Positions 18,315 to 25,122 of a stretch of DNA of 64,000 bases are shown here, one piece after another. A program made the translations under genes and the position numbers. The DNA comes from Adineta vaga (lineage: Eukaryota > Animalia > Rotifera), in assembly GCA_021613535.1 (NCBI GenBank), contig CP075495.1:11284001-11348000 (forward strand), written 5' to 3'. Under the pieces are notes generated by a model. That model was not told the DNA's origin. It saw only the letters and a program-made list of their open reading frames with translations, and did not search any database. The stretch's first letter is position 1. Each line of letters opens with the position of its first letter.

Positions 18315-19016
18315 ATGTCGATTGTTTGTAACTCAATCGCAGTTATTTTCGTTTGTTTCCTGGCCTTTCATGGTTTCAGCAATAATGGTGTTGATGGTCG
18401 AGCTGCAAGAAAAAGTTTTGATGCTGACCTTACTGAATTAGATAGACGTGCTCTCGAAGATGCTTTGATCGAAGCTCTATATAGTCGAAGTCAACGCAAA
18501 CGTGGATCTGGAGATGGTTCAAACTATTGGCCTAGTGGACTAGATGATTTGTCAACCTATTTGTCTAGTGGATTTAGTGGACGTAGAAGAGGTATGCATA
18601 GTGGATTTGGTGGAAGTTCAAGCGGTTACAATGGTGGATATGATGGAAGTTCAAGTGGTTACAATGGTGGAAGTTCAGGCGATTACAATGGTGGAAGTTC
18701 AGGCGATTCCAATGGTGGAAGTTCAGGCGATTACAATGGTGGATATGATGGAAGTTCAAGTGGTTTGTATGGTGGAGGTTCAAGTGGTTACAATGGTGGA
18801 TATGATGGAAGTTCAAGTGGTCACAACAGTGGATTTGGTGGAAGTTCAAGTGGTCACAACAGTGGATTTGGTGGAAGTTCAAGCGGTTACAAGAAACGAT
18901 TTGGAAGACGCCGTTTCCAAGAATCTAATGACAATGATGATAGTGACGAACAATATTACAATAAAAGAAACTACGATGATGGATATCATGGAAAACGAGC
19001 ATTTTCAAGATTTTAA
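18315..19016 (+). CDS. Secreted prepro-polypeptide with convertase sites and a Gly/Ser/Tyr-rich repeat (neuropeptide-like or antimicrobial-like precursor), 233 aa
   Basis: Signal peptide MSIVCNSIAVIFVCFLAFHGFS; RK, RR, RKR, G-RRR, KKR, KR and G-KR sites; intronless. Confidence 0.8.
   Translation: MSIVCNSIAVIFVCFLAFHGFSNNGVDGRAARKSFDADLTELDRRALEDALIEALYSRSQRKRGSGDGSNYWPSGLDDLSTYLSSGFSGRRRGMHSGFGGSSSGYNGGYDGSSSGYNGGSSGDYNGGSSGDSNGGSSGDYNGGYDGSSSGLYGGGSSGYNGGYDGSSSGHNSGFGGSSSGHNSGFGGSSSGYKKRFGRRRFQESNDNDDSDEQYYNKRNYDDGYHGKRAFSRF
18596..18890 (+). repeat. Coding minisatellite of mixed 24-bp and 33-bp units
   Basis: Recurrent GGAAGTTCA core encoding GGSSSGYN / GGSSGDYN (8 aa) and GGYDGSSSGYN / SGFGGSSSGHN (11 aa). 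Confidence 0.9.
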
Positions 19017-19703
19017 ACAAATCAAACTTCTCAATACTATCAAAAACATTCCAAAATCAGACCATTCACTAACACTCTCTTTCTTCTAGATAATCATTTC
19101 TATATTATCTCATTTTATTTTTGATCAATTTATTTTCTATCTTTCTTTTTTTCACACGAATTAGAATATTCGAAAGCCACCAATAGTCATATTCTTATTA
19201 TAACTGACACACTTTGAGCTAACATCATTTTCTCGAAACAACTCATAGATTTTTGATACAAATAAAGGTGATTGAATCGTATGGAATATTATCTTCAGTC
19301 ATTTCTTTTAGTTCAGTTAGTTTTGAGAAGCATTTTAGAATAGTTGATCCTAGGATTGAATTTTGTTTGATCGAGAGCAATGAGATTGTTTTGTTTTCGA
19401 ATTCCTAAGTCAACAGATTGACTCCTACAAAGTTTCATTCAGTTTGTCATTTAAAAGATTCACGATCTTCTAATGGATGTGAGACGCTTATTCTATCGTG
19501 TTCAATGCACAACTAATCAGTTTGTGTTATACTTTGAAAGATTGATAAGAGACGTGAACAAGTCATTTCGTTTATTTTTGATTTCTTCAGATTTTATTTA
19601 TTAACGAAATGCACAACTACACTATTGAAACTATGAAAAGATTAGTACACACACACACACACACTCGCATATACATACAGAGAGAAGAAAGATAAGACAC
19701 TTA

Positions 19704-22700
19704 TTACCAAGCAATACGTTCTAACCAACAGTTAGGATATCGTCGAATGTATAGTTTTCTTAGTTCATCCATAATAAACATCAATGAGCCGAAACCAAGT
19801 GCTGGCAAAACATATAATATTGGTACTCGTTCTGTTTTAAATTGATGTTGCATAAATGGAACTTGTGTAACTAGAACACATGTTAATGTTGATGCAATAA
19901 TACCAACAATCAACCAAAGATTTCGAGAATGACGAGACCAAAATGGATTATGTGTAAAAAATGATGCATAACGTGTACGAGTTGTTAATAGATTAAAACA
20001 TTGCATAATACAGAGAGCAACATAATAAATACATTGACCTGTTTGATTAATCGATGCCAGTTGTTGTTGTTTCTCGACTGAGAATTGTTCTTCAAAATGA
20101 TTAAATTTGAAAAAGATCATTGATAATGGAATACCATTAGCATGATACCACCAGAAAAAACAAAAGAATGAACTGAAACATTCAATATTACCAATAATCA
20201 TATAAGCATGGAAGAGTAGTTTTAAATTTAATAAATGTGATTTATTTCGAATTGTTGGTGGACGATGCATAATATCTTTTTCAGCTTTTTCCGATACCAT
20301 TGCCAATGACATAAAGACATCTACAATACAGGAAAATTTTTAAAATATATATTTATGCTTAAATAAATAGAGATGGAAAACAAATACAATACCATTAAGC
20401 ATGCAAAATATTGTCGCTTGAAAAGCTGATAATGCCAAAGGAATACCAAGCCATGTATTAAAAAAGACAGGCCAAATTTCTGACCAAGAACCTAAAATAA
20501 AATATCGAAAGAATAAAACTAAATTTTCTTATCGGATTCTTGTATTTTCTCTTTACCTCCTGGTAATAAATAAATTGCTACTTTCTTCAAATTATCACTT
20601 AATAATCGACCTGTTTCAATTGCTTTAACAATTGATGAAAAATCATTATCTATTAAAACCATGTCACCTGCTTCTTTCGAAACATCTGAACCAGATTGCA
20701 TTGCAACACCAAGATCAGCACGTTTCAATGCTGGTGCATCATTTGTTCCATCACCTGTGACAGCAACAACTTCTCCACGTCTTTGACATTCCATGACAAT
20801 ACGTAGTTTATGTTCAGGAGATGTGCGAGCAAAGATCAATTCTTGATGTGATAATACCCATGTCCATATATATTCATCCACTAAATATACAATATTTCAT
20901 TAAATTAAGCCAAATACGAATCTGTCAATACATACTGTAAGCAAAATCACTTCCTTTGACAACCATAGCATATGGGATTAAAACTTGTTTTGCACTTCGT
21001 TCTGTTGTCTCTTTTGGATCAGAAAAATAGAAATTTATATATTCCCATGTACGTTTTATCCATGAAACAGGTGTTTTGTTTTCATCATCAGTAGTTAAAC
21101 GAATTTTTGTTGTTTTTTTCTTTGTTTCTTCAAGACGATTTATCGTTCCTAATATATGTGTATCAAGTAAATTTCCATTACGCAATAATTGAACTATTGG
21201 TCGACCTGTTGGTACATCTACACCCACCAATTGAAATGTATCAACACCATTTGCCTGATAAATTTCTGGAGTAAGAATATTCACCTGTGTGCCTATCGCT
21301 ATGGACGTTGTCGGATGATCACCTGTAACCATGGCAATACGAATTTTGGCTTCTCGAGCTTTATGAACTGCATCAGGTACTTCAACTCTAGGCGGATCGA
21401 GTAAACAAAAAAGACCAATAAATGTATAACCTTCTTTTGGAAAACCATTATATGGATCATCAGATACAGCATTCATTAACGATTGATCAAATACATTCTT
21501 ATCAAGTTTTTGTTGAAGCATAGCAATAATACGATAACCACATTTACCCATTTGTTCTTGTCGTTGAATAATTCGCTGACGAATATTATCCGTTAATTCT
21601 CGAATATCACCTGAACTTGTTTTATATGTTGAACATTTGTCATTTGTTAAAACAACATCAGTGGCACCTTTTAATGTGATCAGAATTTCATTTGTTTTAT
21701 GATTTATTATGGATTGATGTTCAGATGATGATATTTGATTGGCCACAATCATGAATTTATTTGTTGAATTAAATGGTAAACAGTGAACTCGACGATACCG
21801 TTGTCGAATATGTTCAACATCGATGCTAAACTTTGTTTCACACAGATCATAAAGAGCTATATCAGCTGCATCACCACTAAGCGTTAAATGTTGAGCATTT
21901 TCTTGTAAACGTTTTTCGGCATTATTACATAAGCATGCACCTATAATTACGAATAGAAGAAAATAAGTTTATGAATCTTAATTTTAAGATAATTTACTCA
22001 TGAATATCATTCTGACTGACAGATGAGAACAATATTTCTCTTAAAAATCTTTCTATTTAATTACCTAAAATTAATTCTCTATGTGGTGTTGCTTGTATAT
22101 TAATTTCATCGAGACCTAATCGTTTTGTTTGAAATGAATCACTAGCATTTAAACTATCAGCTGGTGTTGCTGATCTAGATCCTGATGCAGTCGATAAATG
22201 TCTCATAAGTGTACCAAATATTGATTTCCATTCTCTTTTATCTTGTGAAACAATTGTTGTTGACGGTACTTGATATTCATCATTGATATCCCATAATAAA
22301 TGTGTACAAGTCATTTTATTTTGTGTTAACGTTCCAGTCTTATCTGTACATATGATAGAAACAGAATTGAATGTTTCAACTGTCTGAAGACTTTTTACTA
22401 AGACTTGTTGTGCTGACATGTATTTCTACAAGAGGAAATCAAGTATACTTTTTCATCGAAAATCAATTTTCATCTTAGAACACTTACAGCAACAATAACT
22501 AGAACCAATGTCACTGCCGACGGCAATCCAACAGGTAAAAATCCAACAATCATTCCAACTGAATTTATAACATTTGCATTGAATGATATGTAATTTGGAT
22601 AAACTGGATTCAACCAGACAATCCATGATATCCATATAATAATTATCGATGTAATAGTACAGCATAGAACAAATAAAATGAATCGATTGACTTCACGATG

Positions 22701-23632
22701 AAGACCAGTTATCTCATCTGTATTCGATGAACGTGTTAATTTGCTAACACGACCTATGAAATGGCAATAGTCATATTTATATACAAGAAAAATAAGGTTA
22801 TATATATATTCTACCTAAGATTGTTTGATCTCCTGTAGCAACAACAATAGCTTCACCTTTTCCTTCGACAACTAATGCAGAATAAAATGCCATATTCGTT
22901 GCTTCTAAAAGATTATCATTAGTTGCATCAATTGTACATTTAACTGGTTTAGATTCTCCGGTTAATTCTGCATTATTAACTTTAAGATTGTTACATGATA
23001 TGATACGACAATCGGCAGGTACTTTATCACCAATCTGTAATAGAATAATATCACCTGGAACTAAATTCACTGTAGGAATTTGTTGTTCACAACCCTTATT
23101 ACGGCGAACAGTTGTTAATTTAGGTAAAATTTGAGTGAATGAACGAATTATTTTAACTGATTTCATTTTCTGATAAACATTCAAAACAGCATTGGCAATA
23201 ATAACAATAGTTAAAACAACACCAAGACCTAGACTGTAAAAAGAGAAACAGAAATGTTTTTTTTTGTAGAATTTTTGCTATACTATGGTTTTACTTTGTT
23301 GAATCTGGATTTGGTCTTCCAAATGGTTCATAAGCTAAAAACGCAAAGATTGCCGCAATCCACAATAATGCATTAAAACCAGTAAAGGCTTGAATGAAAA
23401 ACAATCGTATATATCCAGGTTGTGTGGCAGGAGTTGTTTGATTAGGACCATATTTTGTTAATGCTTCATTAACTTGATCCGTTGTTAAACCAGAACGTGT
23501 GTCAAAAAGATTCAATTGAAGACATAATTCATTTAAAGATATTTTGTGTGGTTGATTTAAACAAACATCAATGATTACAGGTCGTTGTTTCGACATGTCA
23601 TCTAGTTGTATTGATGGATTATTCGATGCCAT
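19704..23632 (-). CDS. P-type ATPase, Na+/K+-ATPase alpha-like (type IIC), non-metazoan/fungal-like, with M4 PVGL; multi-exon
   Basis: [34 protein letters not shown] and [16 protein letters not shown] motifs all intact. M5-M6 read [21 protein letters not shown]...IFCMLND after splicing. Confidence 0.9.
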
Positions 23633-25122
23633 AATAGAGGACAACTATGAAAACGAAAATTTTCATATGCATAAATGATACATGTATGATGACTTACTGT
23701 AAGATTATTAAACAGTGACCGAAGTATGTGTCGACTACCGTACGGTCAACTGATGTAAAATTCACTCCGGTATATGCATATATATATATGTACACTCATA
23801 TCCAGGTACTTTTCTATCTTTCTCTCTATTATTCTTTGTCGTCGAAAGTTCAATGACTTAGTATAGACAAAAGAAGAAAAAAAACGTTTGTGTGTGTATT
23901 CTCTTCGAATCGTACCAGTTCATTTGATTTATTCATATGATGGTGCTTTTGTACAGTATCCATTGTATTGATTTTGAGTACAAATGGAATAATGAACCAA
24001 AGAATTGAAACTTCAGACAGAATAAACCATTCATTTTCTGTTTTTGATTACAATGAATTATTATTTTTTCTCTTACCTAATGTATATTCTATGCACAATG
24101 TTCGATTCTCATAATAACTACTCTTGACTTATTGTATAATATATATTTTTAGATCGACAACTTTGTAGGAATATAGATAAAATTGTTCAGTTGTATCAGT
24201 AGAAAAACTAAGTTTTGATTATTATGCCCTGAAGTATGGATATAATTGGTCAATTATTTTTTTCTACTGTTATCATTTCTTTCTCTCTATATATTGACCT
24301 TTCTAGTTCAAAATAAATCAGGTACAATAGTATAACGATTTAGATACATTTTATGTTTAGGTTCGATATTAGTATGAGCTTTGTCTTTTCACCGTATGCT
24401 TGTTCATCTTTCTTTCTTTCTTTGTTAAGTAAACTTGTATAGACCTCGATGGTCGATCTGATAACAAATAACAAATCATGTCTTTTTCTTCATAATATTC
24501 ACTGTATCAAAATTAATTTATTTTCTATTCAACATTATACACAATTCTAATAGAAGTACAGAAATCTCTCTGGATGCATTCAATCGACTCAAATCAAAGA
24601 AACAAGATATCTGACCAGTTATATTGTACTCAGCAATAGTTCCAAATGATATCATTGGTATTTTTATTAGAGAAGAATATATAATACAGAAACGTTGGGT
24701 TATGAATTATCTCTCTATTAAACAGATGAATGAATATGCTCTAAATATCATTTGGAAGGAGAGAAAGAAAATTTGACATTGTATTTATCGATTTGTTTTT
24801 GTATGTGATTGTTACTTTAATGACAAAGTAAAACATCACTTTTAATCTCTTAGTAAACAAACAAATCTATCGCTATTTATCATATTTCTACTACATAACT
24901 TTTCGATAATACACAATATTGACAAGAAGGGCGTAACACGAATAGAATAATCTATACGATCGATTACATTTCATTCTTTTCGTTCACAAGAGAGCAAGAA
25001 AAAGACGAGAATGTTTATTTCTTCTTCTTTTCGATAGAGTCGTCATAACGAGGATAGTTTTATCCGTAGCGATACATATTTCTATTTTACTCGTTTACCT
25101 ACGATTTTAACGCGAAAATAAG

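Follow-up and report, generated by a model that had tools for sequence, protein, structure and literature searches.

What does a P2-type ion pump do when the acidic residue of its fourth transmembrane helix (M4) is replaced by a hydrophobic one? The glutamate of the M4 motif PEGL is the textbook ion ligand and gate of the P2 pumps, and nearly all that is known of its role was learnt from SERCA and sodium-pump mutants. The stretch of DNA analysed here (the window: 64,000 nucleotides from Adineta vaga, a bdelloid rotifer, positions 11,284,001 to 11,348,000 of contig CP075495.1, assembly GCA_021613535.1) carries on its minus strand a P-type ATPase gene in which this motif reads PVGL. The reading that we favour, with somewhat more confidence than doubt, is that the gene codes for an expressed, constrained, beta-independent P2 pump of a fungal/protist-like bdelloid family, with a charge-reduced cation site and a changed ion or stoichiometry.

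The motif and the codon in question are the following.

22524-22535, minus strand: PVGL, standing for the M4 PEGL motif; read in the window and aligned on the PEGL of solved P2 pumps.
22530-22532, minus strand: Val327 codon GTT, at the place of the ion-binding and gating Glu; the same in DNA and RNA-derived contigs.

Read directly on the minus strand of the window, positions 22535-22524 give CCT (22535-22533), GTT (22532-22530), GGA (22529-22527) and TTG (22526-22524), that is Pro-Val-Gly-Leu, within a stretch of 26 residues in the frame of exon 3; both the coordinates and the exon translation of an earlier interpretation made from the letters alone (the sequence-only reading) proved correct. 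The valine stands at what we take to be the position of E327 in Na,K-ATPase and of E309 in SERCA. LPVGLP aligns on IPEGLP/VPEGLP of solved P2 pumps; for exon 3 these matches, accepted at E values of 10 or below, are weak, concern Ca pumps only and are consistent with each other, and they serve solely to place the Val on the PEGL Glu. GTT differs from each of the Glu codons, GAA and GAG, at two positions, as had been noted, and the single-base error that was thought unlikely on this ground is now all but excluded, since one independent DNA assembly and three spliced assemblies derived from RNA all give this codon. At 22530-22532 the contigs of the runs X2, X10, X12 and X17 show no difference from the window, and the difference closest to the Val codon, at 22512, is synonymous. 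The DNA run X2 covers 21645-23700 and the spliced runs X10, X12 and X17 cover 22488-22751 (X12 just to 22617); Logan contigs and not raw reads were compared, so that rare variants would stay hidden. Given the aliphatic residue in the paralogues and in the orthologues of other bdelloids, PVGL is confirmed as a real motif and a chance feature is excluded.

The gene that carries the motif has eight exons separated by seven GT-AG introns of 55-124 nt. Its coding sequence of 3429 nt including the stop encodes 1142 amino acids with no internal stop, from the ATG at 23632 to the stop codon at 19704-19706 on the minus strand.

19704-23632, minus strand: the whole gene, a divergent type IIC-like P-type ATPase of A. 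vaga; from open frames, splice sites and spliced contigs of three runs.
23295-23632, minus strand: exon 1, start codon at 23632, Cation_ATPase_N domain (Pfam PF00690, E 1.4e-12); joint 23233/23295 found in X10, X12 and X17.
22815-23233, minus strand: exon 2, M2 and actuator domain with TGES (residue 204); Pfam PF00122, E 3.3e-26, and NCBIfam TIGR01106, 135 bits.
22488-22753, minus strand: exon 3, M3-M4, carrying PVGL; from the translation.
22065-22425, minus strand: exon 4, end of M4, DKTGT (22330-22344) and a lineage-specific Ser/Thr-rich insert; from the frame and the family scan.
20936-21940, minus strand: exon 5, nucleotide-binding domain and first part of the P domain (FNSTNKF, KGA, DPPR, MVTGD); Pfam PF13246, E 1.1e-17.
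20557-20880, minus strand: exon 6, P domain with TGDGTNDAP and a start of M5 of 13 residues; from Pfam, the family scan and motif alignment.
20393-20491, minus strand: exon 7, M5 with SWSE (20478-20489) and the first part of M6, FCMLN; from splice sites and motif alignment.
19704-20320, minus strand: exon 8, from the M6 Asp (equivalent of D808) through M10 to the C-terminus ...ERIAW and the stop; Pfam PF00689, E 3.4e-32, and alignment to ATP12A.

All catalytic motifs that had been listed as intact, together with the M5 Glu of SWSE and the M6 Asp of CMLND, could be located in the frame: TGES at residue 204, DKTGT at 369, DPPR at 643, MVTGD at 665, GDGTND at 839, SWSE at 906-909 and CMLND at 934-938. 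The Pfam matches (E1-E2_ATPase, Cation_ATPase, Hydrolase, Cation_ATPase_N and Cation_ATPase_C) place the protein in the P-type superfamily. The spliced contigs of X10, X12 and X17, which come from three separate studies, skip the predicted introns as expected and jointly cover all seven; an apparent 3-nt mismatch at the joint 22422/22488 is accounted for by a synonymous AAA/AAG difference at 22423. The X2 contig runs unbroken through 21645-23700 and contains none of the splice joints. Since the RNA-derived contigs have the joints and the DNA run has none, the gene is transcribed and its splicing follows the model.

The gene is under purifying selection. Relaxed selection on this copy was looked for and was not seen in comparison with the orthologous locus L037 of an environmental assembly, where the ratio of non-synonymous to synonymous divergence (dN/dS) is 0.02-0.25 per exon at a synonymous divergence (dS) of 0.86-1.16. 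The transmembrane exons are among the most constrained in this comparison (exon 6, 0.02; exon 7, 0.05; exon 3, 0.11). In the comparison with a second orthologous locus, L036, dS is saturated. The differences between the A. vaga runs, which are of strain or allele origin, comprise 26 synonymous, 10 non-synonymous and 4 intronic ones.

Which kind of P-type ATPase this is can be approached from the scores of the curated families. Family and structure searches were made exon by exon, the exons being concatenated just for the frame, the residue numbering and the classes of strain differences. TIGR01106, the IIC model, is the top NCBIfam model for every exon that has any match, with 43, 135.3, 0, 48.7, 119, 134.3, 0 and 87.1 bits for exons 1 to 8; the rough sum of these singly scored exons, about 567 bits, stays below the curated cut-off of 946.1. 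The models of ENA, SERCA, PMCA, proton pumps and flippases all score under IIC. The IID (ENA) model TIGR01523 reaches 75, 30, 70 and 97 bits, below IIC on each exon and without a match to exon 8; TIGR01647 gives 37-88 bits per exon and never exceeds IIC; the P5 model remains at 37-52 bits, and the flippase model TIGR01652 at 20 and 28.6 bits on exons where IIC obtains 48.7 and 119. Exon 5 has its best matches among solved structures in the alpha subunits of H,K- and Na,K-ATPase (E 4e-27, versus 6e-11 for Ca pumps), and the best solved match of M6-M10 in exon 8 is of the Na,K/H,K type as well (E 1e-19). The exons with M3-M4 and with M5 match no NCBIfam model; exon 3, the most divergent part of the protein, has neither an NCBIfam family nor a solved structure at E values of 0.001 or below, and nothing was found for the M5 exon among solved structures. 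A look-up of exon 8 in the ESM Atlas returned generic Cation_ATPase_C clusters only.

In the cation site itself the substitution in M4 is one of several. The five carboxylates of the IIC site, E327, E779, D804, D808 and D926, read V, E, C, D and N in the window protein, of which E779 and D808 are kept: the Glu of SWSE in exon 7 is the equivalent of E779, the Cys of FCMLN stands at the place of D804, and M8 in exon 8, aligned residue by residue to ATP12A, reads Q-C-F-N with Asn at the place of D926. The protein thus shares with the Na,K/H,K-ATPase alpha subunits the domain order, the catalytic motifs, the M5 Glu (E779) and the M6 Asp (D808), whereas it differs from them in the replacement of E327 by Val, of D804 by Cys and of D926 by Asn and in an extra M5 residue. 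The beta-assembly motif SYGQ and the tail KETYY of these alpha subunits are both absent from the window protein, which ends in ...ERIAW. Counted with the missing equivalents of D804 and D926, four features required by Na,K-ATPase are lacking.

The A. vaga genome holds separate genes of the canonical type. A scan with TIGR01106 found four other loci that score far higher, 405-753 bits on single pieces. NVPEGL, NIPEITPF, DLGTDM and ...ETYY can be read across three of them (L030-L032), with QWADL in L031 and L032. As canonical alpha genes exist in the same genome, the window gene is no site-mutated version of the animal's own Na,K-ATPase. The assignment to type IIC made by the sequence-only reading thus holds in so far as IIC is the nearest curated family; what we find is a member of a separate lineage rather than a Na,K-ATPase altered at a single residue. 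The fourth canonical-type locus, L033 (C4:715000-722000), contains TGES, DKTGT, GDGVND and DLGTDM, and a motif scan of it found no NVPEGL, NIPEITPF, QWADL or ETYY; this locus may be divergent or incomplete.

The window gene belongs to a family. Exon 3 searched against the A. vaga genome (100.8 Mb, six contigs) matched 12 further loci, each of which turned out on an exon-by-exon check to be a complete gene, giving 13 paralogues with the window gene included. They sort by their M4 motif as follows.

PVGL, hydrophobic M4 group: the window gene, L018, L020, L021, L022, L023 and L025.
PMGL, hydrophobic M4 group: L019.
PFNL, hydrophobic M4 group: L024.
PEGL, Glu-retaining group: L026-L029.

The M4 residue is aliphatic in eight of the nine members of the hydrophobic group, the ninth being L024 with PFNL. 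The remainder of the ion path is common to all 13, the four PEGL members included: M5 has a shared stretch of 16 residues followed by E or Q and contains YLLPGGSWS(E/Q), M6 reads FCM(L/F/V)ND, M8 reads Q-x-F-N and the C-terminus is ...AW. Aligned to ATP12A and Na,K-ATPase, every paralogue keeps the equivalent of D808, has Cys for D804 and Asn for D926 and an M5 longer by one residue, and the PEGL members lack SYGQ and the KETYY tail just as the others do. In L018, L019, L020 and L025 the M5 Glu is itself replaced by Gln (SWSQ), which leaves the M6 Asp alone as a carboxylate. The sole departure in a catalytic motif seen across the family is IGDG in L021-L024, where the others read TGDG. In L024 (C1:11848500-11855300), where IGDGTND stands for TGDGTND, M4 reads LPFNLAS against LPVGLPS, the Gly and the second Pro being also gone, and these changes suggest that this copy may be drifting away from pump function. 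The window gene lies on contig C2 and has no partner copy (ohnologue) on another contig. L018 (PVGL) and L019 (PMGL) form a tandem pair about 6.4 kb apart at C1:9432500-9445500, and the counterpart L020 is found on C4.

The substitution is also found outside A. vaga. An exon 3 profile compared with 1.84 billion representatives gave 255 matches, of which all seven below 1e-30 are rotifer-like exon fragments. The sequence-only reading had named as contrary evidence a set of orthologues that all have PEGL; the orthologues found, which are 87-92% identical to the window gene in exon 3, retain PVGL, and they break at the same point (...VIVA, then the intron). The orthologous loci L036 and L037 of environmental assemblies both read PVGL. 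Among named species, Rotaria sordida, R. socialis, R. magnacalcarata, Didymodactylos carnosus, Adineta ricciae and A. steineri possess a set of proteins with PVGL, PLGL, PMGL or PIGL and a set with PEGL (the A. ricciae model P0151, a chimeric gene prediction, was left out as a query). Because the named bdelloid proteins vary between V, L, M and I, the M4 position is held aliphatic and not strictly as Val. A Didymodactylos protein sits in the window gene's own orthogroup in the exon 5 tree (support 98), and on these sequences the split between hydrophobic and PEGL proteins is older than the bdelloid radiation. The gene structure is less stable: in L037 (293-3148, corresponding to window 20557-23632) exons 1-6 are fused in one frame and introns 1-5 are missing, L036 retains intron 1 (exons 1/2) and intron 5 (exons 5/6), and the differences between these loci and A. 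vaga indicate that intron presence varies among close bdelloid species.

The non-rotifer matches share the signatures of the family: they have YLLPAGSWSE, carry a non-acidic residue for D804 and Asn for D926, and end in ...AW. Those with names come from early-diverging fungi (Racocetra, Cetraspora, Dispira, Tieghemiomyces and Thoreauomyces) and from Physarum, and a word search with the environmental relative P0032 found Glomeromycota and Zoopagomycota at 32-35% identity; named non-bdelloid animals were not seen among the closer matches of the sequence searches. The M4 motif is readable in 125 representatives: 87 have E, 14 T, 6 V, 5 M, 4 D, 3 S and 2 C, and L, A, N and Q occur once each. In the fungus Dispira the motif is PVGL, and several proteins in a row with PTGL occur in the fungal/protist clade. 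The Glu has thus been lost repeatedly in the fungal/protist-like clade, and the description of the residue as invariant cannot be retained for this lineage. Two of the environmental near relatives lie on contigs with other recognisable genes: L034 (contig of P0008) has transposases of the piggyBac and hAT types together with acetyltransferase genes of bacterial type, and L035 (contig of P0023) a Laminin_G_3 gene and a reductase resembling those of nonribosomal peptide synthetases.

Phylogenetic trees were built from single exons, exon 8 (M6-M10) and exon 5 (nucleotide-binding and P domains), by a quick search under LG+C20, with SH-like approximate likelihood ratio (SH-aLRT) support. The Na,K/H,K-ATPases, represented by sponge, fly, fish, lamprey, bird and reptile sequences, split from all else (support 100 in exon 8 and 98 in exon 5), and the rotifer family forms a single clade (96 and 94, respectively) nested in the fungal/protist clade, with environmental sequences as its nearest neighbours. 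This placement fits a horizontal acquisition as well as an old paralogue that most animals have lost. The position of the window gene within the family differs between the exons: it groups with the PEGL genes in the exon 8 tree (support 87) and with the other hydrophobic clade in the exon 5 tree (support 76), and neither grouping of its orthogroup is rejected by the approximately unbiased test (p 0.80). On these trees a single loss of the M4 Glu in bdelloids and two losses are both possible.

A fungal IIC lineage set apart from the animal one has already been recognised (PMC1479386), as has a 'group II' that unites fungal and protist sequences with some from invertebrates, all without SYGQ (PMC9609216); its pumps lack the alpha/beta assembly motif, and the C. 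elegans CATP proteins were placed near fungi and stramenopiles as well (PMC9609216). The function of the fungal proteins of this NK/PAT group is poorly known (PMC7588218, PMC1479386), the role of the NK1 and NK2 genes being unclear (PMC7588218); for CATP-1, pump-independent roles are reported and the pump function is debated (PMC11631496). The rotifer family resembles the NK/PAT pumps (Blastocladiella BePAT1/2, Glomeromycota IIC and Beauveria NK1/NK2; the BePAT sequences were outside the compared set) in M5 YLLP(A/G)GSWSE, in an M6 where Cys or some other non-acidic residue stands for D804 and T/N-D follows, in M8 Q..(G/F)N and in the C-terminal ...AW. It differs from them in the M5 GG, the M6 N-D and the mostly hydrophobic M4, where the fungal and protist proteins have mostly PEGL or PEGM. 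CATP-1/2/3 are likewise IIC-like proteins of an invertebrate that lack SYGQ and fall outside the main Na,K-ATPase clade of animals (PMC9609216), a likeness taken from the published descriptions. By both clade and signatures the window gene belongs with the fungal/protist type IIC (NK/PAT) pumps. The proposal of an undescribed P2C subtype has to be narrowed accordingly: the lineage is already described (PMC1479386, PMC9609216), and what is new here is at most the rotifer-wide subclade with a hydrophobic M4. A literature search, which did not reach subscription journals, found neither the rotifer family nor its M4 substitution in any paper.

How would such a protein work? In our reading an aliphatic residue took the place of the M4 Glu in one or two old subclades, among them the one with the window gene's orthogroup, and it has been maintained across Bdelloidea since then. 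The phosphoenzyme cycle would still run, without a beta subunit, and with the M5 Glu and the M6 Asp as the sole carboxylates left fewer charges would probably be moved per cycle, for example one small cation or proton, perhaps without counter-transport, instead of 3 Na+ for 2 K+. Known pumps tolerate such a change: in Na,K-ATPase the replacement of the M4 Glu by Gln or Leu lowers the affinity while transport persists, ENA pumps (PSSL) work without this Glu, and the P3A proton pumps run on a single M6 Asp with a hydrophobic M4. As the Na,K-ATPase mutants, ENA and P3A all function without the M4 Glu, a cation or proton pump with altered stoichiometry is the most economical explanation.

Several points weigh against it. 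In SERCA-type pumps the M4 Glu is needed for ion-dependent phosphorylation, and by this analogy the Val could also mean that coupled transport has been lost. Another divergent IIC-like protein, C. elegans CATP-1, has the pump-independent roles already mentioned (PMC11631496). The PFNLAS of L024 and the IGDG of L021-L024 suggest that some copies are drifting functionally, the read evidence for the Val codon comes from contigs instead of raw reads, and the trees come from quick searches on single exons and contain many long branches.

The first alternative takes up the loss of transport. The protein may have kept its catalytic cycle and abandoned coupled ion transport, acting as a regulator, sensor or scaffold in which the hydrophobic M4 marks a dead transport site. 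The missing gating Glu, the absence of the D804 and D926 equivalents, the additional loss of the M5 Glu in some paralogues (SWSQ), an M3-M4 and an M5 too divergent for any curated model and the discussion of functions of CATP-1 that do not depend on pumping (PMC11631496) all speak for it. We nevertheless consider it unlikely: the strongest constraint falls on the transmembrane exons 6, 7 and 3 (dN/dS 0.02-0.11), the family as a whole shows an invariant M6 Asp and a conserved M5 Glu/Gln, and the window gene keeps every catalytic motif, features not all of which a pure scaffold would need.

A more far-reaching view is that the hydrophobic-M4 clade represents a new kind of P2 pump of fungal/protist-type IIC origin, perhaps acquired horizontally, with a proton, a single cation or a non-metal compound as cargo and with phosphorylation that is not ion-gated. 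The gene would then have multiplied in bdelloids, dropping Na+/K+ exchange, and its phosphorylation would have become ungated as in P3 and P4 pumps. Judged from the sequences, we regard so large a departure as quite unlikely.

A switch to a non-metal substrate such as a lipid, a polyamine or an organic cation might be proposed by analogy with the P4 (PISL) and P5 pumps, in which the place of the M4 PEGL Glu is taken by hydrophobic residues. The conservation of an aliphatic residue there across Bdelloidea and the family-wide reduction of the site charge are compatible with this idea, and a large gene family could serve several substrates. The likeness of the window protein to P4 flippases (PISL) and P3A proton pumps is, however, one of a single site feature, the kinship in sequence being limited to the P-type core (TIGR01652 20-29 bits, TIGR01647 37-88 bits). 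The M5 Glu and the M6 Asp, typical P2 cation ligands, are retained, the flippase model obtains 20-29 bits where IIC gets 49-119 and the P5 model 37-52, the rest of M4 (GLPxAVTL) is P2-like, the sister genes with PEGL hardly differ otherwise in M5, M6 and M8, and at the level of sequence, as distinct from structure, nothing resembles the features of the P4 substrate-entry groove. With the acidic M5/M6 ligands kept and nothing else P4-like, the lipid or organic substrate envisaged by the sequence-only reading gains no support from our data, and such a switch is very unlikely. As to a codon error or a decaying pseudogene under relaxed selection, which general considerations alone could suggest (a single genome assembly, a gene without an ohnologue on the partner chromosome), we reject it as having a negligible chance, given that independent DNA and RNA-derived assemblies of several studies agree on the codon, that the frame of 1142 codons is unbroken and has seven canonical introns, that dN/dS lies far under 1 and that PVGL is found in orthologues of other species.

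The family offers a natural set of old, expressed and constrained putative pumps in which V, L, M or I takes the place of the PEGL Glu. The PEGL sister genes of the same genome, little different elsewhere in the ion path, make up a ready-made pair for residue swaps. A. vaga is thereby shown to be an animal with 13 putative pumps whose lineage is known elsewhere from early-diverging fungi and from protists. Bdelloids live through drying and through osmotic extremes, and one may speculate that an enlarged and unusual set of cation pumps could bear on this ability.

Two repeats were observed downstream of the gene. A (GT)n microsatellite lies just beyond the stop codon, at about 19650-19680 of the window, in the region of the 3' untranslated sequence. 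About 0.8 kb past the 3' end of the pump gene, at 18568-18892, there is a tandem array of 24-, 33- and 57-nt units; read on the plus strand it gives a Gly/Ser/Tyr-rich repeat and on the minus strand a His-rich one, and it probably belongs to a gene for a low-complexity protein.

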